Sequence record: PV764938.1
Direction: 5' to 3' (one strand)
Length of the DNA: 64,000 nt
The translations under genes were made by a program, and so were the position numbers. This document shows, in pieces, positions 1,457-55,178 of the stretch. Numbering within the stretch: position 1 is the first letter of the stretch; each line of letters begins with the position of its first letter. A model generated the notes under the pieces. The model did not search any database. It was not told where the DNA came from and was given only the letters and a program-made list of their open reading frames with translations.

Positions 1457-3793
1457 ATGGCTGATAATTCCGGCAACAAATTCAACACGCAACGCGCCGA
1501 CGAGCTCGTAAAAGCCGCTGCAATGCTTGCGCTGGGCCGCAATAACGAGTACGTCACTGCTGACCACCTCGTGCTGGTCTGCATGGATGATGAATATCTC
1601 CGCGAAAAACTGACCATCCTCAAGGTCGACATCGACGGCTTCGCCCGCGACTTCAGGACTTTCTTCGAGACGACCTACCCCATCGGCACGGTGCAGAAGA
1701 AGCAGCGCGTTACGGAGACCTTCAACAAGGTCATTCATCGCTGCATGAGCAACATGGTCTTTTCGGGCCGGCGTGATGTTACGGCGGCGGACTTGATCCT
1801 CGCTGTTATGCAGGAACCCGACAGCTACTCCGCATATTACCTGAACCAGAACGGGCTCGATGTCAATGAGCTGAAGCAGGCTCTCGCAGACGACGCCGAC
1901 GACGACGTAATGTCGGATGATCCGAATGCGCCGGAAGATCAGCGCGGCGGTGGCGATCTCTCCAAGATGAGCCCCGAGAAGGCCAAGAAGATCCTGGCCA
2001 AGTATTGCGTCAATCTAAACGAAGAAGCGTTCAAGGGCAAAATCGACCCGCTCATCGGCCGCGAGTCGGAAGTTTACGCGGTCGTCAAGACGGTCTCGCG
2101 TCGCACCAAAAACAACATCATCCTGACGGGTGAACCTGGCGTCGGTAAGACGGCGGTGGTCGAAGGTCTCGCAAAGCTGATCGTTGACGGTAACGTGCCG
2201 GAAGTGATCCTGGGCTCCACCATTTACTCGCTCGACGTTCCCGGCCTCGTTGCTGGTGCAAAGTTCCGCGGCGATATGGAAGAGCGCGTGAAGCAGGTTC
2301 TGGTCGCGCTGACGAAGGTCGAAAAGCCGATCCTCTTCATCGACGAAATCCACATGATCATGGGCGCCGGCGCTGCTGGTAAGGGCGAAAGCATGGACAT
2401 TTCCAACATGCTGAAGCCGGCATTGGCCCGCGGACAACTGCGTTGCATTGGTTCGACCACACTCGACGAATATCGCAAGCACTTCGAAAAGGACAAGGCA
2501 CTCCAGCGTCGCTTCCAGAAGCACGATGTTGCTGAACCGTCCATCGAAGACGCAAAGCGCATCCTCAAGGGCGCAAAGGCGGCCTACGAAGAGTTCCACG
2601 GCCTCGTCTATGATGACGCTGCAATCGATACGGCAGTCGAGCTGACCGCTCGCTACGTTACGGACCGGTTCCTGCCGGATAAAGCGTTCGACGTTATCGA
2701 CGCTGCTGGTGCAACCCAGAAGATTGCAAACCCTGACGTTCGCGTTGCTGTGATCACTTCCGGCCTCATCGAGGACGAAGTTTCGATCATCGCGAAGATC
2801 CCGGCGAAGACCGTGAAGGAAAGCGATGCCGACAAGCTTGCACATCTGGAAACGGATCTGCGCGAAGTCGTATACGGCCAGGACGATGCACTGGTGACGG
2901 TCTCGGACGCGGTTATCCTGTCCCGTGCAGGTCTGCGCGAAGCCAACAAGCCGGCCGGTGCCTACTTGTTCAAGGGTCCAACTGGTGTCGGTAAGACGGA
3001 AGTTGCGAAGCAGCTTGCAAAGACCCTGGGCGTTCCGCTCCTGCGCTACGACATGTCCGAGTACATGGAGAAGCATTCGGTCTCCAAGCTGATCGGTGCA
3101 CCTCCCGGTTACGTTGGTTACGGCGATGGCCAGGCCGGCGCGGGCAAGCTGGTGACGGATATCGAAACCAACCCGCATTGTGTGCTCCTGCTCGATGAGC
3201 TTGAAAAGGCTCACCCTGACGTGTTCAACGTTCTGCTCCAGGTCATGGACAACGGTCGCCTTTCGAGCCAGTCCGGCAAGACGGTCTCCTTCGAAAACGT
3301 CATCGTGATCATGACCAGCAACGTCGGCGCACGCTTCAACAGCAAGGCAGCAATCGGCTTCGGTTCGTCCGACCGCAACGAAACGGATACGAAGATCCTC
3401 AAGGACACGTTTGCTCCTGAGTTCCTCAACCGCCTCGATGCAATTGTTGACTTCAACAAGCTCCGCCGCGACGATATCCGCAAGGTCGTTGACAAGTTCC
3501 TGGGCGTACTCGCCGGCCTCGCTGCTGACAAAAAGGTCACCATCGACGTCACCGACGACGCGAAGGAATGGCTCGGCGAGAAGGGCTACGACAAGGAAAT
3601 GGGTGCGCGTCCGCTCGGTCGTGTGATCAACGACAACTTGAAGAAGCCGCTCTCCAAGGCCATGCTGTTCGGAGAGCTGAAGAACGGTGGCCACGTAACG
3701 GTCGGCGTTGTCGATGACAAGCTCAAGCTGGTCTACGGCCCGGTGCAGGAGATTGCTCTCCCCGAAGTAGCTGAAGAGGCTGCTGAGGCCTAA
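1457..3793 (+). CDS. clpA: ATP-dependent Clp protease ATP-binding subunit ClpA
   Basis: Clp N-domain, two AAA+ modules ([15 protein letters not shown]; [20 protein letters not shown]), GARPLGR sensor; ATG 1457 directly follows the def stop. Confidence 0.9.
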
Positions 3794-3816
3794 GGGCCTC
3801 ACACTTTCCCAAAATA

Positions 3817-3855
3817 TTGATTCTCCCCTCTCGCTCTGTTATAGAGAGGGGAGAA
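3817..3855 (+). promoter_or_regulatory. Sigma70-like promoter embedded in a 12-bp inverted repeat
   Basis: TTGATT(3817)-17 nt-TATAGA(3840); arms TTCTCCCCTCTC (3821-3832) / GAGAGGGGAGAA (3844-3855). Confidence 0.5.
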
Positions 3856-3902
3856 ATACCGCAGGCGCTCAAAGATCGAACAAAAAACGGAGCCCTGCAA
3901 AA

Positions 3903-4256
3903 ATGGATAAATCACTCGCTACAAAGCTGATCGACAAGCGCCTAATAAACGAATCAACCGAAGTGGTTGCACGTTATAAAGGCTCTAGTATCAGCGGCGA
4001 CACCAGCGTTGTAGGTACTGATATCTTCAGCGTTGATCAGGTACTTGGAGCAGATCAAGAAGGTGTAATCTTCATCCGGGTAACCTCTACACGGGACGGG
4101 TCGAAAAGAATTATCTGTCACCGAGATATCATCGAAATCGATGGTATGGAACCAAATAGGTTCGCAAGCGTTTACAACATTAAGGCCGATGGTGGTGATG
4201 CCGCAGTGGGCAAGCGTCGTGGACGCAAGCCGAAAGACCGCAGCAAAGTCGCTTGA
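3903..4256 (+). CDS. Hypothetical protein (basic C-terminal [11 protein letters not shown]-hook-like)
   Basis: ORF with upstream GGAG, fits the operon. Confidence 0.6.
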
Positions 4257-9415: not shown

Positions 9416-10477
9416 ATGACGCAATTTAATCCACCAAAATTCATTACCGGATATATCACGAACATCCAAGACTTCGAAGCTTGGACTGAATCGGCTCCTA
9501 AACTTTGGGAAGGAATGGCATTTCGATGGACTATCGATATGACAGTATCACCACAAGCTCATGGTTCGGATGCAACAGCAACACCATTCCAATACGATGG
9601 TTTTGATATCAAGGTTGGTGACTGGGTTCATGACACTATCGGTAACACTTTTAAAGTGTATCGAATTGAACTAGCTGGTACCTATAATGCGACTGTTATT
9701 CTTGAAGACGTAGATCAATACAACACATACCGAGATCCATATATTTCGGGTTATGGTGGTCCGCAAATTGGTTCTTGTGGTATCTTCTCGTTGAGTGCTG
9801 AAGGCACTCCGATTCTTGAAGGTTTCCCATCAAATACATTTGCCGATAACATCACATCCAACATTGTTGGCCGTTTCAACAACCGAAACACTAAGACAGA
9901 GTTTGTCCAAGTTGAACAAACCAATCATGGTTTTGAAGTTGGTGATTTTATTTGCGTTGATGTCGACAATGAAGGTCGCTTCGAACTTGTCCCTGTAACA
10001 TCCGCAAATCTCGCAATTGGTGTGGTTTCACAAGTTTTCGGTCCAACAATGGGCCACTTCAATTATCGTCCACTTGGTAAGCTAATGGATGATATTCAGC
10101 CGGCTCTTGTCGGTAATTATGGTGACGTTTTCTACTTGGATCCGCAGAATCCAGGCAAACTAACAAACGTTCGACCAACTAGAAATGCAAAACCAGTATA
10201 TATTAGACTGGACTCCGAAACTCGTGGTTTCCTCCTTAACGTGAGTGTTGACGAAGATACTATCACAGTTTCCTACGCTATTGAGGAAGTCACCCTTGAT
10301 CAGGTTACTTTCACACTTCCAGTTAATGCCGCGGTTGTTCAAACAATGAGCATCAACGGTATCGAAAATAAGAACTTCACTTTCGATAACACAACGAAAG
10401 TGGTCACGTTCGACCCCGAAGCCACAGGCTACGGGGTTGAGGAAACGGACGAAGTAATCTTTGTCTATAACACTTAA
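9416..10477 (+). CDS. Putative virion structural protein
   Basis: AGGAG RBS; C-terminal GYGVEETDEVIFVY motif shared with the next gene. Confidence 0.6.
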   Translation: MTQFNPPKFITGYITNIQDFEAWTESAPKLWEGMAFRWTIDMTVSPQAHGSDATATPFQYDGFDIKVGDWVHDTIGNTFKVYRIELAGTYNATVILEDVDQYNTYRDPYISGYGGPQIGSCGIFSLSAEGTPILEGFPSNTFADNITSNIVGRFNNRNTKTEFVQVEQTNHGFEVGDFICVDVDNEGRFELVPVTSANLAIGVVSQVFGPTMGHFNYRPLGKLMDDIQPALVGNYGDVFYLDPQNPGKLTNVRPTRNAKPVYIRLDSETRGFLLNVSVDEDTITVSYAIEEVTLDQVTFTLPVNAAVVQTMSINGIENKNFTFDNTTKVVTFDPEATGYGVEETDEVIFVYNT

Positions 10478-35330: not shown

Positions 35331-35521
35331 ATCTTGTATATTGGTGTTGACTACTGAGTGGAATCCGTTTACTTCTTGCTCTGTTAACAAATCACCGAGG
35401 CTTTTGATAGGGCATAAGCCTTGGTCGGTTTTGGCGGGATTCTAACGGGGGTAGCGGTCATGCGTGTATAAGCAAAGTTGCATATTCGTCGAGGGTTACA
35501 ATAAAGCAGTGGATCGCAAAA

Positions 35522-35983
35522 ATGGAATACAGCAAGCCAAAGTTCTTCAGGTATCATTACGAGATTGGGTTCCCCAAGTATGTCGGGGAAATGTGCCTGG
35601 ACTTCTTTCAGAACTTTGAAGAAGTGAAGACTACCTTTCACAGTGCCAACCAGCTTATGGATGAACGCAACGGGACTATCCCACTGCCGTCCCGTGCAGA
35701 CTTGCTGCATCCGTCGAATACGCTTGTCGAGATCTACGAAGTAGTCGATAAGTACGACATGCCCTCGAAAGTTATGCAAAAGGCGCTCGTGCGCGTCCAT
35801 CACTTGGACTCCGAAAAGGACTTTGCTTATGTGGTCGCCCGTGACGGCTTTTTGATCTCGGCGTGGGCCAACGACAAAAACGACATCCACCGGCTCGAAC
35901 AGCGCGATGTCTACTTCTCAAACTTCCTTCAGGAAAACATCGAGGTTCCTGACATACTAAAAGACATTGAATCTGAGGAATAA
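35522..35983 (+). CDS. Hypothetical protein
   Basis: ORF; C-terminal YVVARDGFLISAWANDKNDIH. Confidence 0.55.
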   Translation: MEYSKPKFFRYHYEIGFPKYVGEMCLDFFQNFEEVKTTFHSANQLMDERNGTIPLPSRADLLHPSNTLVEIYEVVDKYDMPSKVMQKALVRVHHLDSEKDFAYVVARDGFLISAWANDKNDIHRLEQRDVYFSNFLQENIEVPDILKDIESEE

Positions 35984-45970: not shown

Positions 45971-47341
45971 ATGAAACTCTATAACAGCATGAGCAAACAA
46001 CTCGAGAAGTTTGTCCCAGCGGACGAACGTCGGGTGACCATGTATGTTTGCGGCCCCACAGTATACCAGGCCCCACATATCGGCAATCTTCGGCCGGCTG
46101 TGGTCTTCGATACGCTTTATCGATACCTGCGCGACAAATACGGGGCTGACCACGTCGTTTATGCGAGCAATTTCACGGACATCGACGATAAAATCATCAA
46201 AAAGGCCAACGACAATCGGACGTCCATCGACAATATCACGGAAGAAGCCATCGGCCATTACCAGCGTGATCTGCTCAGCCTGAACGTGTTGGGTCCGAGT
46301 GATCGTCCATATGCGACCAAGTATGTGGATGATATGATCCGGATGATCGATCGTCTCCAGGAAAACCATTACGCTTATGAGGTGAATGGGAACGTTTGGT
46401 TCTCCGTCGCCGATAGCAAGCACGTGAGTTTCCAACCGGATCGCGATAACGCAGGACTCGACGAAACATTTACGGCGGACAAAAAGGATCCCAGAGATTT
46501 TGCGCTGTGGAAAGCAGCAAAGCCAGGCGAACCCTTCTGGGAAAGCCCTTGGGGTCCAGGTCGTCCAGGCTGGCACATTGAATGCTCAGCTATGATTCGG
46601 GCAACTCTCGGTGACACCATCGACATTCACGGTGGTGGGTCCGATTTGATGTTCCCACATCATGAGGCCGAAAACGCTCAAAGCTTTGCCGTTACTGGAA
46701 AGCCCTTGGCCAACTATTGGCTTCACAATGGCATGATGAACATTGGGATGGCCAAAATCTCCAAAAGCCTCGGCAATTCCATCTCCATGCACGATCTCAA
46801 TCAGAGATTCCCAGGAGAATCCATTCGGTTGTTCCTGATGATGACACATTATCGGAGCACGATGAATTTTGATCATGGCTTGATCAGTGACGCTCATGCG
46901 CTGATGAATAAGTTGTATCGTGTGCTCTACAAGTACCGGGATGAACTGCTCGACCCCGCCGAAGTCGAACATGATGTGTTTGTGGTGAAGGCGTTCGAGC
47001 AGGACATGAATACTGCGGAAGTCATAACACGGCTTCAGCAGTTGGCCACAAAGGCCCTAAAGGAGTCCCATCCGTCGATTCGCCAGAAGCTGTTGACACA
47101 GTTGATCAAGGGCGGACAACTCCTGGGTGTACTCAACTACACACCAGAGGATTGGTTTCATATTGGTGTTAACCATGTTGAAATTGAGGAGTTGATTTCG
47201 GCACGGAACTTTGCTAGGGCGGCAAAGGATTGGCAACTTGCGGATATCTATCGCAAGTCGCTAAACGACAAAGGTGTCCATCTGGACGATCTCGATGGTG
47301 AGACGTTCTGGCGGACAATCAAAGGCGACGTTAGGCAATAG
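45971..47341 (+). CDS. cysS: Cysteinyl-tRNA synthetase
   Basis: MYVCGPTVY, HIGN, FTDIDDKII, DFALWK, GRPGWHIECSAM, HGGGSDLMFPHHE, KISKSLGN; AGGAG RBS. Confidence 0.95.
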   Translation: MKLYNSMSKQLEKFVPADERRVTMYVCGPTVYQAPHIGNLRPAVVFDTLYRYLRDKYGADHVVYASNFTDIDDKIIKKANDNRTSIDNITEEAIGHYQRDLLSLNVLGPSDRPYATKYVDDMIRMIDRLQENHYAYEVNGNVWFSVADSKHVSFQPDRDNAGLDETFTADKKDPRDFALWKAAKPGEPFWESPWGPGRPGWHIECSAMIRATLGDTIDIHGGGSDLMFPHHEAENAQSFAVTGKPLANYWLHNGMMNIGMAKISKSLGNSISMHDLNQRFPGESIRLFLMMTHYRSTMNFDHGLISDAHALMNKLYRVLYKYRDELLDPAEVEHDVFVVKAFEQDMNTAEVITRLQQLATKALKESHPSIRQKLLTQLIKGGQLLGVLNYTPEDWFHIGVNHVEIEELISARNFARAAKDWQLADIYRKSLNDKGVHLDDLDGETFWRTIKGDVRQ

Positions 47342-47982: not shown

Positions 47983-48058
47983 CGCGGTTTAGCTCAGTTG
48001 GTAGAGCAGCGATCTCTAAAATCGTTTGTCACGGGTTCGAGCCCCGTAACCGCGGCCA
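47983..48058 (+). tRNA. Amber-suppressor tRNA, anticodon CUA (tRNA-Trp-like scaffold)
   Basis: 76-nt cloverleaf: acceptor CGCGGTT/AACCGCG, D arm GCTC/GAGC, anticodon stem GCGAT/ATCGT with loop CT-CTA-AA (CTA at 48016-48018), T arm ACGGG-TTCGAGC-CCCGT, G73, encoded CCA. Confidence 0.93.
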
Positions 48059-48389: not shown

Positions 48390-49142
48390 ATGGAACCGCT
48401 ATTCGACATTAACGGCTTGATGTTTTGGAGCCAGAAGGAAATTGCTCTGCGTGAGCGTTTCAAGGCCCAGATCGCCGAAGGAGTAGCAGAATTCCTCCAC
48501 GGTCAGAATCCCATGTTCCTGCAGAACTTCCTGCAGGTGGAAGCTCCGCTGCTTACACCACGTTCCGCATTGAATCCCAACTATACGGACGAGGATATTT
48601 GGGCACAGGAAACGCTGGAAGTCAGCGGCTCCCATGAGCTTGCGCTGCGGCCGGAAACTACTCCAGGTTCCTACACGTATGCGGTGCACCTGTTGAACTC
48701 CCACAGCGCCCACAAGCCTCCGATGGTCGTATGGCAGGCCGGTAAGAGCTTCCGGCGTGAAAACGAACAACCGTCCAAGCACATGCGGTTGAAGGAATTC
48801 TACCAACAGGAGTTCCAGTGCGTTTATGCGGCTGATACCATGAACGATTACCAGGAAGCCTCGCTGGAACCCATGCGCAAACTGCTTGGTGATATCATCG
48901 GCTTGCCCACGCGCATCGTAGAGTCCGATCGTTTGCCCTCCTATAGCAAGCGCACCATGGACATTGAAGTCGACAACGGCGACAAGTGGATGGAAGTCTG
49001 CTCGATTAGCCTGCGCACGGACTTCCCTGAAAAGTTTAAGTTCGTCCACAAGGGCGTTCAGAAGGAGAAGGATCTCCTCGTGCTTGAGATCGCCGTTGGT
49101 CTCGATCGCGTCGTATACAATTACCTGCAGAGGACGAAATAA
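48390..49142 (+). CDS. Class II aminoacyl-tRNA synthetase catalytic core, GlyRS(alpha2)-like, lacking an anticodon-binding domain
   Basis: Motif 1 VEAPLLTP, LRPETT, motif 2 QAGKSFRRE...RLKEFYQQE, MEVCSIS.R.DF, motif 3 EIAVGLDR; ends 10 aa after motif 3. Confidence 0.8.
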   Translation: MEPLFDINGLMFWSQKEIALRERFKAQIAEGVAEFLHGQNPMFLQNFLQVEAPLLTPRSALNPNYTDEDIWAQETLEVSGSHELALRPETTPGSYTYAVHLLNSHSAHKPPMVVWQAGKSFRRENEQPSKHMRLKEFYQQEFQCVYAADTMNDYQEASLEPMRKLLGDIIGLPTRIVESDRLPSYSKRTMDIEVDNGDKWMEVCSISLRTDFPEKFKFVHKGVQKEKDLLVLEIAVGLDRVVYNYLQRTK

Positions 49143-50556: not shown

Positions 50557-50975
50557 TGAAATTTCAAGTAGAAGATCGCGGCACTATCCTGAGCATCAAT
50601 CCAACGGTGCCTCACTGCATTATCAGTATCAGCGACACTCGTGGGGATCGCGCCGATCCCGCAGTCAATGATCTGACCCGCGATGTATTGTTCTTGAACT
50701 TTCACGACACAAATGAGCCGAAGCCCGGAATGGATCTGTTCACGGTTCGGCATGCGATCGACGTCCTCAATTTTTACGAGCGTTACAAGGGCGAAGTCGG
50801 CTTGTTCGTGGCCCACTGTAACGCTGGTATGTGCAGGAGTCCCGCAGTAATCGCGGCCCTGCAGAAGATTCATACGGGCAACGATGACAACTGGTTCCGA
50901 ACCAAGACACCAAACTCCCTTGTCTACCGCACAATCTTGGGAGAAGCATACGAGCGCGGACTCCTTACCGTATGA
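50556..50975 (+). CDS. Protein-tyrosine/dual-specificity phosphatase-like protein
   Basis: IISIS, LNFHD, HCNAGMCRS (CX5R). Confidence 0.8.
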   Translation: MKFQVEDRGTILSINPTVPHCIISISDTRGDRADPAVNDLTRDVLFLNFHDTNEPKPGMDLFTVRHAIDVLNFYERYKGEVGLFVAHCNAGMCRSPAVIAALQKIHTGNDDNWFRTKTPNSLVYRTILGEAYERGLLTV

Positions 50976-50979
50976 GCTT

Positions 50980-51276
50980 ATGATTTCGGATTCCGAATGG
51001 GATCCATTTTTGGATAAGTTCTTCCCGCATCGCGTGGATTTGTACTTGAAGCATCTCGAAGGCTACAACGTGGTCAGCGCGATCTTCGAAGCACATGAAG
51101 CATTTGGTCCTGCACGTTTCCGTACCCGTTTCTTAACGACTCTTCACGTCTACGTATTGGATACGCTTGAGGAGAAATCCTATTACAGCCGGACTGGGAC
51201 TTGGTTCATGGTCCACAACGAATTTTATTTTGCGAACCACAACGATGCGGTTCTTTTCAAGTTGAGACACGGATGA
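50980..51276 (+). CDS. Hypothetical protein (AxxFKL-terminal family)
   Basis: FYFANHNDAVLFKLRHG. Confidence 0.6.
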   Translation: MISDSEWDPFLDKFFPHRVDLYLKHLEGYNVVSAIFEAHEAFGPARFRTRFLTTLHVYVLDTLEEKSYYSRTGTWFMVHNEFYFANHNDAVLFKLRHG

Positions 51277-51615: not shown

Positions 51616-51714
51616 ATGAATAAGAAATACACCCACTTGTAGCTTCATCGGTCTCGTTCTCCGCCATTTGTGCTTGAGTTAATCGCACGAATTTCAAATG
51701 GAGAACGACAATGA
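51616..51714 (+). promoter_or_regulatory. Putative leader ORF (MNKKYTHL-amber-...ERQ-opal) overlapping an RBS-occluding hairpin
   Basis: TTGACA 51581, TTAAAT/TAAATA 51604-51610, ATG 51616, TAG 51640-51642, TGA 51712-51714 overlapping ATG 51711; stem TCGTTCTC(CGC)CATTTG / CAAATGGAGAACGA. Confidence 0.4.
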
Positions 51715-52025
51715 CCAATATCAATTCAAACATAGACCTAGACGACGATCTCGATGACGACGAGGATGACTACCTATTCGACGATGATGAATGGGAAGAC
51801 TCTGCATTTCCAGCGAGAATCGCAACCGAATATCCAGGTTGGCACCAAATGAAGATCACCCGTTTCACCGGCGGAACGCTGGCGGAGATCAAAGAATGGT
51901 GCGACGAGAATATTACTCGTGGACTCTGGAAACAAGTAGGTTGGAATTCTGGTTGCTCTTATAGCGTAGGTATAGTAGTAGAACACGCTAGAGACGCCAT
52001 GCTATTCAAACTGCGCTGGAGCTAA
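51711..52025 (+). CDS. Hypothetical protein with an acidic N-terminus (AxxFKL-terminal family)
   Basis: GGAG RBS; EIKEWCDEN..RG.W, DAMLFKLRWS. Confidence 0.7.
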   Translation: MTNINSNIDLDDDLDDDEDDYLFDDDEWEDSAFPARIATEYPGWHQMKITRFTGGTLAEIKEWCDENITRGLWKQVGWNSGCSYSVGIVVEHARDAMLFKLRWS

Positions 52026-52027
52026 AT

Positions 52028-52423
52028 GTGACTGACGAGTATTTGGCAAAACCAATCGTGCCACAGGCCAAAGAAAAGGAACTCAACTTGAAGTTCCGAA
52101 AGGGTGTCCTGTATACGGCGGGTGAGGTCATTACTTGCATTCACAACTATTTGCCGTATCGGGTTCCCCTCAAGGAACTGGGGATCAGCGAAGAACGGAC
52201 ACAGCATGATGATCCGAATGGTCCTCCCGGCAATGCTCGGTTCGAACGGACTGAACGCCTGAGGGAGTTCCTCACCAACATTACGCCGGATCTGATGACT
52301 GACGTCGGAAAGGGTCACAAGCGTTACGAACACAACAAAGCCGGCTCTTGGGCAATCATCGTCGGCTGGGTCTATCTGAGGGATCCGAAACTGATTGCAA
52401 TTTTAAAGCTGGCTTTCGGTTGA
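52028..52423 (+). CDS. Hypothetical protein (AxxFKL-terminal family)
   Basis: GTG start; YLRDPKLIAILKLAFG. Confidence 0.6.
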   Translation: MTDEYLAKPIVPQAKEKELNLKFRKGVLYTAGEVITCIHNYLPYRVPLKELGISEERTQHDDPNGPPGNARFERTERLREFLTNITPDLMTDVGKGHKRYEHNKAGSWAIIVGWVYLRDPKLIAILKLAFG

Positions 52424-52490
52424 CAAATAAACCAGCATAGCTTAAATAGAGAACACTGGTCATGGTGATCAGCTTTTAGGAGAAAACGAA

Positions 52491-52985
52491 ATGAAGTATT
52501 AGGTTGAAGAAAAGCTGCGTGTTCGGGCCTACAACGGTCTGAACGAGACTTCCCTCCCTGCGGCTACGCCCGCATATTTCGGCGACGACGAGTCGTTTGA
52601 AGAAGCCAGCAATAAGCTTCGCATTTACAGCATCATTCGGGGCGATCTCGAAATGACCGCTGGTAAGCTTGCCTCCCAGGCATGCCACGCTGCGAAGAAC
52701 TGCGCTATCATCGCCCAGCAGTACGAGCCTCAGTTGCTCGAGACTTATCAGGGCCCTGATTTCATCGGTACTCAAATCATCCTCAAGGCGAAGAATGAAG
52801 CCGCAATCCTGAAGGCCTACGAAGCCGCTAAGGAAGCAAACCTCATCACCTCGCTCATTGTTGATGAAAAGCATGTCATGCTCCCGCACTTCGACGGCAA
52901 CCCCATCATTACCGCTCTCGGTATTGGTCCTTGCACTCGTGAACAGGCGCATCACATCACCAAGCGGTTTGAGGCTGTACGATGA
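52491..52985 (+). CDS. pth2: Peptidyl-tRNA hydrolase type 2 with an in-frame amber codon at position 4 (readthrough gene or pseudogene)
   Basis: AGGAG-N8-ATG AAG TAT TAG GTT..., in frame with IYSIIRGDLEMTAGKLASQACHA, IILKA, LIVDE, TALGIGP; the track ORF at 52653 starts inside the conserved first motif. Confidence 0.8.
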
Positions 52986-53305
52986 ACCCGCGCTGGAAGA
53001 AAGCAATGGACGCCTATAAAGCGGTCATTTGCGCACCAAAAGAACAAGGCGAAGATGGTTGGTCTCCGCCTCCGACGTCGGAACAATGGCGCGACAAAAA
53101 GTGGAGCAGAGAGCTCCGCAAGATGTGGCCCGAATATACGAGCATCCGACTCGAAGATATCCGATTCTATTCGGAGAAGCAAAAGTGGTGCAAAGAAAAC
53201 GCCCAGTTCTTCTGGGTAGCTGGTAATCAGCAGATGTGGTATTTTTCCGATCGGAACTCCGCGCTGCTTTTCAAATTGTCCTTTGGAGGGAATGTAGAAC
53301 TATGA
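52982..53305 (+). CDS. Hypothetical protein (AxxFKL-terminal family)
   Basis: QKWCKEN, WYFSDRNSALLFKLSFGG. Confidence 0.65.
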   Translation: MNPRWKKAMDAYKAVICAPKEQGEDGWSPPPTSEQWRDKKWSRELRKMWPEYTSIRLEDIRFYSEKQKWCKENAQFFWVAGNQQMWYFSDRNSALLFKLSFGGNVEL

Positions 53306-53891: not shown

Positions 53892-55178
53892 ATGATGAAA
53901 AAGAAAATACCACTCCACAGTCTCGTGCTTATGGTTGGCCCCTCGGGAGCCGGCAAAAGCACTGTGACCTCCGCACATTTTGCGGACTACGAAATCGTAA
54001 GCAGTGACAGTCTACGTCATGAGCTCGTAGGTGATTTCCAGCGTCAGGACATTAACCCGCTGGTTTTCAATGAGCTGCATGATCGTGTTCGCACAAAGCT
54101 TGCGATCGGTGAGCGCGTGGTCGTTGATGCAACCCATCTGCGCAAGGCAGATCGTATGGGCGTCGTAAACATCGGTGTTCAGCTTGGGGTTCCGGTCTAC
54201 TACATCGTGGTAAACCGTCCGCTGGAAGAGAAGCTTGCTACGGCAGGCTGGCGTGCCGGCGTTCCTGGCCTCATCGAGCGTCACGACGAAACGTTCCGAA
54301 ACAACGAGCGTGAGATCCTTCTGGGCGATAACGTGGCTACGGTCATCGATACTCGCAAGGAAGAGTTCGAAGCGGTCGTGAAGGCTCCAGGTGGCGATGT
54401 TGCCGACCATATCTTGGGACTTGGTTTCAAGGGCGTTATGGTTCTCGGAGACATTCACGGAATGCGTGAACGCCTCAAGAGTGCCATCGATTGGGCCATC
54501 ACGCGCAACCTTTACATGATCTTCCTGGGCGATGTGATCGACTACGGTCCGCATAGCCTGGAATGCGTAGACATTGTCTACGATATCATGACTCGCGGTC
54601 GCGGATCGATGACGATCGGCAATCACGAAAAGAAGATTGAACGTTGGATCACGCAGGATCGGGCCTTCCAGGAGAAGGGTACTCCGATCAAGCTGCACTT
54701 GAGCGATGGAAATCGCGCAACGACCAACCTTGTGCAGGCTTTGAGCCAGGGTGACCGCACCAAGTTTGAATGCAAGTTCACAACGATGGTGAATCTGGCT
54801 CGAAACCACATCCTGCTTGGTGAGAACTTCTTGCTCACGCATGGTGGTGCAGAACCCGAAATGTTCCGTATCACCGACCATCGCTTGGGTAAGCGTTTGG
54901 AAGGTATCGCCCTTTACGGCGAAACCGACAACACGGTTCAGCGCACCGACGGATATCCGAACCGAGTTTATAACTGGGTCAACAGGATTCCCGAGGGCAA
55001 GCAGGTCATCGTAGGCCACGACATCCGCAGCACGCTCAAGCCGCTGGTAGAAACCGGTACGCGAGGCGGAACTGCTACTTTCATGGACACTGGTTCCGGT
55101 AAGGGAGGACACCTCACTACGGCCCACGTTATCCATGAGAATGGCAACTGGGAAATCAAGGCGTTCACTGCCCACTAA
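53892..55178 (+). CDS. pnkP: Polynucleotide kinase-phosphatase (bacterial Pnkp kinase + metallophosphoesterase, no ligase domain)
   Basis: LVLMVGPSGAGKST, SSDSLR, VVDATHL; GDIHG, GDVIDYGP, GNHE, HGG, VGHD, DTG. Confidence 0.85.
   Translation: MMKKKIPLHSLVLMVGPSGAGKSTVTSAHFADYEIVSSDSLRHELVGDFQRQDINPLVFNELHDRVRTKLAIGERVVVDATHLRKADRMGVVNIGVQLGVPVYYIVVNRPLEEKLATAGWRAGVPGLIERHDETFRNNEREILLGDNVATVIDTRKEEFEAVVKAPGGDVADHILGLGFKGVMVLGDIHGMRERLKSAIDWAITRNLYMIFLGDVIDYGPHSLECVDIVYDIMTRGRGSMTIGNHEKKIERWITQDRAFQEKGTPIKLHLSDGNRATTNLVQALSQGDRTKFECKFTTMVNLARNHILLGENFLLTHGGAEPEMFRITDHRLGKRLEGIALYGETDNTVQRTDGYPNRVYNWVNRIPEGKQVIVGHDIRSTLKPLVETGTRGGTATFMDTGSGKGGHLTTAHVIHENGNWEIKAFTAH

Follow-up and report, generated by a model that had tools for sequence, protein, structure and literature searches.

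An early in-frame amber codon in the peptidyl-tRNA hydrolase gene of Sinorhizobium phage Phosso and its probable decoding by a phage suppressor tRNA

The stretch of 64,000 nucleotides (nt) analyzed here (the window) corresponds to positions 124001-188000 of PV764938.1, the genome of Sinorhizobium phage Phosso, a 469-kilobase (kb) jumbo phage isolated on S. meliloti. It carries a gene for a peptidyl-tRNA hydrolase of the PTH2 family (Pth2), which is annotated in GenBank as 'peptidyl tRNA hydrolase' at 52653-52985, the 229 nt upstream of it being devoid of annotation. We describe an in-frame amber codon, hereafter the gate, at the fourth codon of an upstream-extended Pth2 frame, together with a phage tRNA of anticodon CUA, labeled 'Undet' in GenBank, that we propose as its reader. 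The features involved are listed below in window coordinates.

47983-48058, plus strand: amber-suppressor tRNA of the phage (anticodon CUA), presumably the key to the gate (ARAGORN; Rfam tRNA model, 67 bits)
52420-52448, plus strand: promoter-like element with -35 TTGACA (52420-52425), a 17-nt spacer and a weak -10 TAAATA (52443-52448)
52456-52472, plus strand: stem-loop CTGGTCA-TGG-TGATCAG of the 5' untranslated region, in the interval between promoter and ribosome-binding site (six-sequence alignment)
52478-52482, plus strand: Shine-Dalgarno (SD) sequence AGGAG, 8 nt before ATG 52491, kept in relatives
52491-52499, plus strand: start and first three Pth2 codons (Met-Lys-Tyr), a mini open reading frame (mini-ORF) if termination wins at codon 4
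52500-52502, plus strand: the gate, in-frame amber codon UAG as codon 4, with G as next base
52503-52652, plus strand: 50-codon N-terminal part of Pth2 outside the GenBank annotation, with a small hairpin, a helix and strand beta1
52653-52985, plus strand: rest of the PTH2 domain, i.e. the annotated ORF of 110 amino acids (aa) including its stop codon at 52983-52985

A sequence-only reading of this DNA had pointed out the SD sequence, the codons ATG, AAG, TAT and TAG and the 50-codon open frame, all of which lie exactly where it had placed them. The AGGAG at 52478-52482 is the sole SD-like motif within 52461-52638. Behind the TAG, 50 codons without a stop lead to the ATG at 52653, from which the frame continues to the stop at 52983-52985; no in-frame ATG, GTG or TTG occurs between the gate and 52653. 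The promoter proposed in the same reading is present, and an alignment of six upstream regions shows TCGGTTGAC of its -35 element to be invariant in 6/6 close relatives and followed by an A/T-rich, -10-like hexamer. Its -10 element, however, agrees with the consensus at 3/6 positions, and because of this weakness a consensus scan did not list the promoter. Downstream, the stem at 52456-52472 is kept by changes on both sides in 5/6 close relatives (CTGGTG/CACCAG, CTGGGC/GCCCAG, CTGGCT/AGCCAG, CTGGTGA/TCACCAG), and it may form a 5'-terminal mRNA hairpin in Phosso and in 4/5 of its closest relatives.

The 50 codons after the TAG are coding, under purifying selection and in the same frame as the start ATG. 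Their codon-usage score equals 0.48 per codon versus 0.47 in the gene body, the other two frames being strongly negative, and the ratio of non-synonymous to synonymous substitution rates against five close relatives amounts to 0.16-0.36 in this extension and 0.08-0.12 in the body. The Pfam profile PTH2 (PF01981; cut-off 23) scores 72.9 bits for the 160-aa piece behind the TAG and 60.6 bits for the annotated 110 aa; the match begins at profile position 3 for the former and at position 13 for the annotated ORF alone. The profile match thus starts 10 residues upstream of the annotated methionine, in agreement with the earlier suggestion that the annotated start cuts into the first strand of the domain. 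Solved PTH2 structures align from their residues 3-7 onward to RIYSIIRGDLEM. An AlphaFold (AF2) model of the 160 residues after the TAG, with a predicted local distance difference test (pLDDT) score of 92, shows a helix (29-36) and strand beta1 (39-46) at pLDDT of about 90-96, both upstream of Met 51. A Foldseek comparison with the PTH2 crystal structures 1q7s, 1wn2, 1rlk and 2zv3 gave target-normalized template modeling (TM) scores of 0.87-0.90 over about 120 columns. Since beta1 and the helix before it precede Met 51, a protein started at 52653 would lack a core strand, and the model thereby predicts a complete alpha/beta fold of the PTH2 type only when translation starts further upstream. 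The residues G54, K55, Q59, H62, D121 and H124 and the motif GIGP (140-143) are invariant in 21 sequences, and by these features Phosso Pth2 is a PTH2 family member and a predicted hydrolase.

The gate recurs in related phages. In the IMG/VR contig 3300020156_000001 (86% identical), AAGGAG and 8 nt precede ATG ACT TAC AAC TAG GTT GAA, two Logan contigs read ATG ACG TAT TAG GTA and ATG CAT CAG TAG GTA, and a metagenome contig (L163) has MKY-TAG with a CUA tRNA 4372 nt upstream. Among the closest relatives, the SD-ATG-xx-TAG arrangement is kept while synonymous changes accumulate downstream. The Pth2 gene of Agrobacterium phage Atu_ph07 (72% identical protein) begins with AAGG-ATG ATT GGC GAA CAC TTT TGA, followed by the same open frame, and appears to be the same design with an opal codon. 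As the TAG is common to an isolate genome and several independent assemblies, it is neither a sequencing error nor a private nonsense mutation. No orthologue with a sense codon at the gate position was found among the relatives, so that neither of these two objections, which the sequence-only reading had itself raised, was borne out.

Two database proteins, P0001 (MTYQVDN...) and P0004 (MHQQVNK...), resembled uninterrupted orthologues with glutamine at the gate, but were ruled out because their DNA reads ATG ACG TAT TAG and ATG CAT CAG TAG, the gene caller having applied an alternative code. On short contigs, this caller code (TAG = Gln) accounts for the glutamine in P0001 and P0004 and at two loci (L120, L121), and probably also in P0005, P0010, P0074, P0089 and P0092; database proteins can hence conceal in-frame stops.

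To quantify these patterns, 79 IMG/VR and 80 metagenome loci with 10-kb flanks were collected, which after removal of duplicates yielded 107 distinct short-type Pth2 genes. An SD-ATG followed by 1-8 sense codons and an in-frame TAG was present in 44/107. In a further 23, including genes with two ambers, TAG is the first upstream in-frame stop outside these strict criteria. An in-frame TGA and an in-frame TAA gate three genes each, and 19 are candidate +1 frameshift genes, several of them tentative (e.g. L067, L081, L135). The remainder consists of eight possibly canonical starts, six genes whose first upstream in-frame stop is TAA or TGA without a detected SD-ATG, and one on a contig that stops short of the gate. 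TAG is the first in-frame stop upstream in 67/79 genes, versus 19% of the stop triplets in this DNA (p = 3e-36). Conservation of the stop, the ribosome-binding site and the extension at orthologous loci, which the earlier reading had put forward as a check, was thereby confirmed. A search of IMG/VR for close relatives of the TGA-gated P0088 returned nothing new.

Fifty distinct relatives share the SD-ATG, 1-8 sense codons and an in-frame stop, giving mini-ORFs of 2-9 codons. The base after the stop (+4) is a purine in 47 of the 50 (p = 9e-11), a context in which suppression by a tRNA is favored over termination in E. coli. Directly after the stop, ATT is present in 12, GTT in five and GTA in four of these genes, and GAA, GAC, ACT and GGT also occur. 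The length of the mini-ORF would fit the range of minigenes; its peptide and last codon vary among relatives and are not conserved.

The identity of the stop codon follows the anticodon of a linked suppressor tRNA. In Phosso, the CUA tRNA is located 4.4 kb upstream of Pth2. For 38 TAG-gated genes, the locus also encodes a CUA tRNA, often on the same strand and 12-170 nt before the gene, and a TAG-gated contig of an uncultivated virus genome (UViG) carries one as well. The complete Atu_ph07 genome, searched with ARAGORN, encodes one suppressor tRNA, with anticodon UCA, and no CUA tRNA; its authors likewise reported a single UCA suppressor (PMC6102473). In the TGA-gated loci L053 and L055, a UCA tRNA lies 4.3 kb downstream in both. 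The pairs thus number 38 for TAG/CUA and three for TGA/UCA (L053, L055 and Atu_ph07), and no locus combines TAG with UCA or TGA with CUA (Fisher p = 9e-5). This bears out the expectation from the sequence-only reading that the gate co-occurs with its cognate tRNA. We also considered that the Atu_ph07 UCA tRNA might be the Phosso CUA tRNA with a changed anticodon, which was ruled out as the two are not recognizably alike. Four loci (L137, L174-L176) carry homologous TAA gates of the form GGAGG..ATG TTA/TTG TAA.

Two further gate types extend the pattern. Ten metagenome loci (L152, L181-L183, L190, L192, L196, L197, L199 and L201) contain two in-frame TAGs in the context ACN TAG GTN, with coding sequence between both stops; in 7/10, a CUA tRNA lies 96-487 nt upstream. 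In some relatives, translation would have to shift by +1 to pass from the SD-ATG mini-ORF into Pth2, the mini-ORF occupying the -1 frame. The recurrent shift sites are ...TAG C TCT, ...CAG TAG G and ...TCG CAT TGA C. Wherever upstream DNA is available for such loci, an odd tRNA adjoins the gene whose nucleotides 34-37 are complementary to four bases of the site: GCUA/UAGC (L145, L146, L194, L195), AAUG/CAUU (L191, L193, L202) and CCUA/UAGG (L049). ARAGORN calls these tRNAs Ser-GCU, Ile-AAU or Arg-CCU, yet they have class I size, with normal 7-nt loops in most. From their sequences, they may be natural quadruplet decoders or bind a +1 triplet out of frame. Further shift sites were noted in L127 (UAGG) and in L172 and L178 (UAAC), and in L168 and L169 an odd tRNA accompanies tandem TAGCTAGC.

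Parsimony on a tree built from the Pth2 domain requires a minimum of 16 changes of gate type, several of which are forced by well-supported branches; the tree rests on few columns, which leaves many of its forks unresolved. One well-supported clade contains TAG/CUA (L050, L051), TGA/UCA (L053, L055) and UAGG/CCUA (L049), and the TGA gene of Atu_ph07 nests among TAG genes. Such frequent swapping of key and lock suggests selection on the pair itself.

The gate is specific to Pth2 in the DNA that was scanned. We scanned for stops behind which a long coding leader lacks any canonical start. In the complete Atu_ph07 genome, it ranked Pth2 first, as the sole match with an upstream SD-ATG, and no convincing gene split internally by TGA was found. 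Over the window and 38 related loci (about 820 kb), the same scan returned Pth2 genes only (12 TAG, one TGA), and no other TAG-split gene was found within the window. Two TAG-preceded leaders in the window, at 3771-3903 and 35411-35522, were rejected as further gates and are ordinary intergenic regions. The DNA polymerase of Atu_ph07 (207883-214846; L027 7883-14846) is annotated in pieces (207883-208944, 211877-213130 and 213149-214846), and the scan flagged no TGA join between them; introns, inteins or split genes may account for the pieces.

We found neither interruption of many genes nor a low coding density, the marks of a genome-wide stop reassignment (code 15 or code 4). Under table 11, coding sequence fills the window densely, and TAG still ends a few of its genes, which argues for the gating of a single gene rather than a reassigned code. 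Among long ORFs of Atu_ph07, 72/102 end in TAA, and 267 of its genes were counted as ending in TGA (PMC6102473).

More distant phage Pth2 genes have ordinary ATG starts and random upstream stops, with a suppressor nearby only in rare exceptions. These ungated types comprise the 'MRQLIIARKDL' type, XacN1, Xoo-sp13, RsoM2USA, SCTP-2 and gp680 of Atu_ph07. A gated Pth2 was accordingly ruled out for the isolates XacN1, Xoo-sp13, RsoM2USA and SCTP-2, which fall in the distant canonical clade. The second Pth2 of Atu_ph07, gp680 (466378-466845), has an N-terminal membrane helix and an ordinary SD-ATG start, so that Atu_ph07 at least possesses one gated and one ungated Pth2; in Phosso, too, BLAST points to another Pth2-like place. 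A Pth2 of the canonical type in L092 (about 10031-10050) reads ATG AGA TAG CTT ATT..., the TAG replacing the glutamine of MRQLIIARKDL. No suppressor is present among the 20 tRNAs of that locus, and this phage may be genuinely TAG-recoded.

We estimate at roughly 80% the probability that Phosso Pth2 starts at ATG 52491 and that its full 164-residue form is produced through decoding of the UAG at codon 4 by the phage CUA tRNA. In this scheme, transcription would probably start at the promoter-like element at 52420-52448, and ribosomes would load at AGGAG and ATG 52491, the only ribosome-binding site. The UAG at codon 4 would be contested by release factor 1 and the CUA tRNA of the phage: termination would release Met-Lys-Tyr, and decoding would lead to the 164-residue enzyme with the complete PTH2 fold. 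Given these two fates, the output of Pth2 would be set by the charged phage tRNA relative to release factor 1. Gate and tRNA would together act as a tRNA-dependent translational lock and key, the gate apparently being readable only by the phage's own suppressor tRNA. That full-length Pth2 depends on UAG readthrough, as the sequence-only reading had proposed, is strongly supported by the conservation of the gate, the selection on the extension and the double ambers. Of the two conditions that it named for Pth2 synthesis, the phage CUA tRNA or a limitation of release factor 1, the former is the most likely and is supported by the covariation of stop and anticodon and by the linkage of tRNA and gene, while the latter would be a possible alternative trigger. 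Our best guess as to purpose is that the timing and amount of Pth2 are tied to the supply of working phage tRNA, with the three-residue peptide only as waste; with the gate among the first 2-9 codons, a closed lock costs as little as possible. The sequence-only reading had further suggested that termination would by default leave a tripeptide minigene, which may provoke peptidyl-tRNA drop-off and so generate the substrate of Pth, and that the device may act as a sensor of translation stress; both are hypothetical roles.

Several observations weigh against this reading. A CUA tRNA was not seen in the fetched DNA for 19 of the 44 clear TAG-gated genes, and no UUA tRNA lies in reach of three TAA-gated genes (L137, L174, L175). 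Because many contigs are short, the absence of a tRNA from a locus is uninformative by itself; the missing CUA tRNAs may be encoded elsewhere, as the UCA tRNA is in Atu_ph07, and the TAA-gated loci either have an ochre suppressor elsewhere or are an exception to the model. The acceptor stems and discriminator bases of the suppressors vary widely, even between phages with 92% identical Pth2, so that the tRNA is only presumably charged. Likeness to other phage tRNAs likewise yielded no consistent isotype, and the residue inserted at the gate may be immaterial. A suppressor would also read genuine terminators, so that either its efficiency must be low or readthrough is tolerated. A possible TTG start at beta1 is additionally present in some distant gated genes, and within Phosso the scan for other TAG-interrupted genes covered the 64-kb window. 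Charging, codon reading, the inserted amino acid and the purpose are inferred from sequence, as is readthrough itself.

Some of the same observations would suit an attenuator, in which low constitutive readthrough of the UAG by near-cognate host tRNAs would limit Pth2 to small amounts and the CUA tRNA would serve some other function. The CUA and UUA tRNAs missing from the fetched DNA fit this explanation, as does the failure of earlier phage work to find suppressor targets (XacN1, PMC5852040). It leaves unaccounted for, however, that stop identity tracks the anticodon of the linked tRNA (38 + 3 versus 0) and that the tRNA in many cases precedes the gate by 12-170 nt. Moreover, serial amber codons would cut near-cognate readthrough to almost nothing, and the frameshift-gated relatives have tRNAs complementary to their shift sites. 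We therefore regard an attenuator as unlikely. The mini-ORF could also be a leader, with re-initiation or independent initiation at a non-canonical codon just past the UAG (GTT, CTG, ATT) and no role for a suppressor. The frequency of ATT (12), GTT (5) and GTA (4) after the stop in the 50 genes speaks for this, together with the GTG directly after the TGA in L053 and L055 and the TTG at beta1 in some distant relatives. Re-initiation nevertheless predicts neither the match between stop and tRNA nor the near absence of TAA, which is the commonest terminator in these phages. GAA, GAC, ACT and GGT after the stop fit the purine rule better than a start codon, the leader contains no SD, and the double amber gates have coding sequence between their stops, all of which makes re-initiation quite improbable in our judgment.

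The least credible option, to which we assign only a very small chance, is that the gene is as annotated, with 110 residues from ATG 52653, or is dead through a nonsense mutation or a sequencing error. GenBank does place the start at 52653, and a weak GGGG lies 10 nt before this ATG. The 110-aa product, however, would be devoid of strand beta1 and of the helix before it, purifying selection acts on the 50 codons upstream, and the same TAG is shared by the isolate genome, by several metagenome assemblies made independently and by dozens of diverged relatives. Decoding of the gate by the phage suppressor tRNA remains our preferred explanation.

For the wider group, we lean slightly towards a more general proposal, namely that the 5' ends of Pth2 genes in a large clade of mostly giant phages are 'encrypted' by interchangeable signals, each with a dedicated tRNA encoded next to the gene. 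These signals would comprise UAG, UGA, possibly UAA, tandem UAGs and the +1 sites UAG-C, UAG-G and CAU-U, and the tRNAs would include natural quadruplet or +1 decoders. The swaps would then suggest an arms race, or a need for orthogonality, around the control of peptidyl-tRNA recycling during infection.

The CUA tRNA of Phosso is flanked by two synthetase genes:

45971-47341: full cysteinyl-tRNA synthetase (CysRS), upstream of the CUA tRNA
48390-49142, plus strand: stand-alone 250-aa catalytic core of a class II aminoacyl-tRNA synthetase (Pfam tRNA-synt_2b, E = 1.9e-12)

The synthetase core lies 330 nt downstream of the tRNA, and about 10 relatives have CysRS, tRNA-CUA and the synthetase core arranged in this same order. 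The core is a candidate for a dedicated charging enzyme of the suppressor tRNA. No homologue of either CysRS or the core was detectable in Atu_ph07, and for want of a homologue of the core there, we treat this candidate as a lead only. Pth2 is surrounded by tRNA-related functions, with CysRS, the tRNA, the synthetase core and a kinase plus metallophosphatase in Phosso and RnlA in Atu_ph07. The kinase plus metallophosphatase is a P-loop kinase (AAA_33) fused to a calcineurin-like phosphoesterase (53892-55178, plus strand), which resembles polynucleotide kinase-phosphatase RNA-repair enzymes and is kept downstream of Pth2 in about 20 loci; in Atu_ph07, the T4-like RNA ligase RnlA is located just upstream of the same cluster. 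Pth2 is also flanked by small ORFs on the plus strand (50884-51276, 51711-52025, 52028-52423 and 52982-53305) with similar C-terminal ends (..A(V/M/L)LFKLR(H/W)(G/S), ..AILKLAFG, ..ALLFKLSFGG). The same ends occur in L003 and Atu_ph07, and the ORFs look like a tandem paralogue family.

Suppressor tRNAs are regular in jumbo phages with the standard code, and the Pth2 gate would provide them with a first identified, concrete target. As the start codon lies upstream of the early stop, gene callers truncate Pth2 and the target is missed, and some callers instead silently translate TAG as glutamine. The annotation of Pth2 can accordingly be corrected in Phosso, Atu_ph07 and many metagenomic phages. 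The proposed switch is a compact unit of tRNA and gene that would couple an enzyme of translation quality control to one dedicated tRNA. It represents a minimal, single-gene recoding and perhaps a point of entry into the code changes that affect whole genomes of other phages. If the frameshift-gated relatives hold, they offer natural pairs of tRNA and shift site of direct interest for genetic-code engineering.

A published description of a Pth2 gate was not found in the literature searched, of which the coverage is thin for subscription journals. Three known systems share parts of the proposed design. In Streptomyces, the bldA tRNA-Leu(UAA) is one dedicated tRNA that regulates a few TTA-containing genes, and the likeness is that of a tRNA as key and a codon as lock. 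The bldA codon is a rare sense codon and its targets form a cellular regulon, whereas here a stop or shift site with early termination as default would be read in a compact phage module with one known target. The gene for release factor 2, prfB, is autoregulated by a +1 frameshift at an early in-frame UGA, where the gene product resolves the competition without any special tRNA. It shares with Pth2 that a translation-factor gene has an early stop and is expressed by competition, and the frameshift-gated relatives with ...TCG CAT TGA C are similar to it. The Phosso gate, however, is in frame, so that no prfB-like +1 shift is involved, such gates being restricted to relatives, and any control of the gate by Pth2 itself would be purely hypothetical. 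The bar minigenes of lambda are very short ORFs that release peptidyl-tRNA, which Pth recycles, and they matter only when Pth is limiting. The combination of SD-ATG, a very short ORF (2-9 codons here) and a stop is alike, but bar minigenes are free-standing, whereas the Phosso mini-ORF shares the reading frame of a longer conserved protein, to whose N-terminus it is homologous.

Among phages, the recoded phages (Ivanova 2014; Borges et al., bioRxiv 10.1101/2021.08.26.457843) are comparable in that a phage suppressor tRNA reads in-frame stops in a host with the standard code, for which control of translation timing has been proposed. In those phages, many genes, mostly late and lytic ones, are interrupted by in-frame stops, and applying the standard code makes the coding density collapse. 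Phages of the Phosso type differ in that their ORFs are intact under the standard code and genes are still terminated by both TAG and TGA. A single gene is gated in the DNA that was scanned, which is always Pth2, within its first few codons and often beside the tRNA. The recoded-phage preprint mentions no hydrolase (bioRxiv 10.1101/2021.08.26.457843). Closest to the present case are the suppressors of Atu_ph07 and XacN1, which belong to the same tRNA class and the same kind of phage, Atu_ph07 being a close relative of Phosso. The Atu_ph07 authors named no suppressor target and only counted TGA terminators (PMC6102473), and the XacN1 authors read through annotated amber terminators and found no target of the CUA tRNA (PMC5852040). 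The Pth2 of XacN1 itself has a normal start. What we propose as target in Phosso is a start codon upstream of Pth2 that is absent from the annotation.

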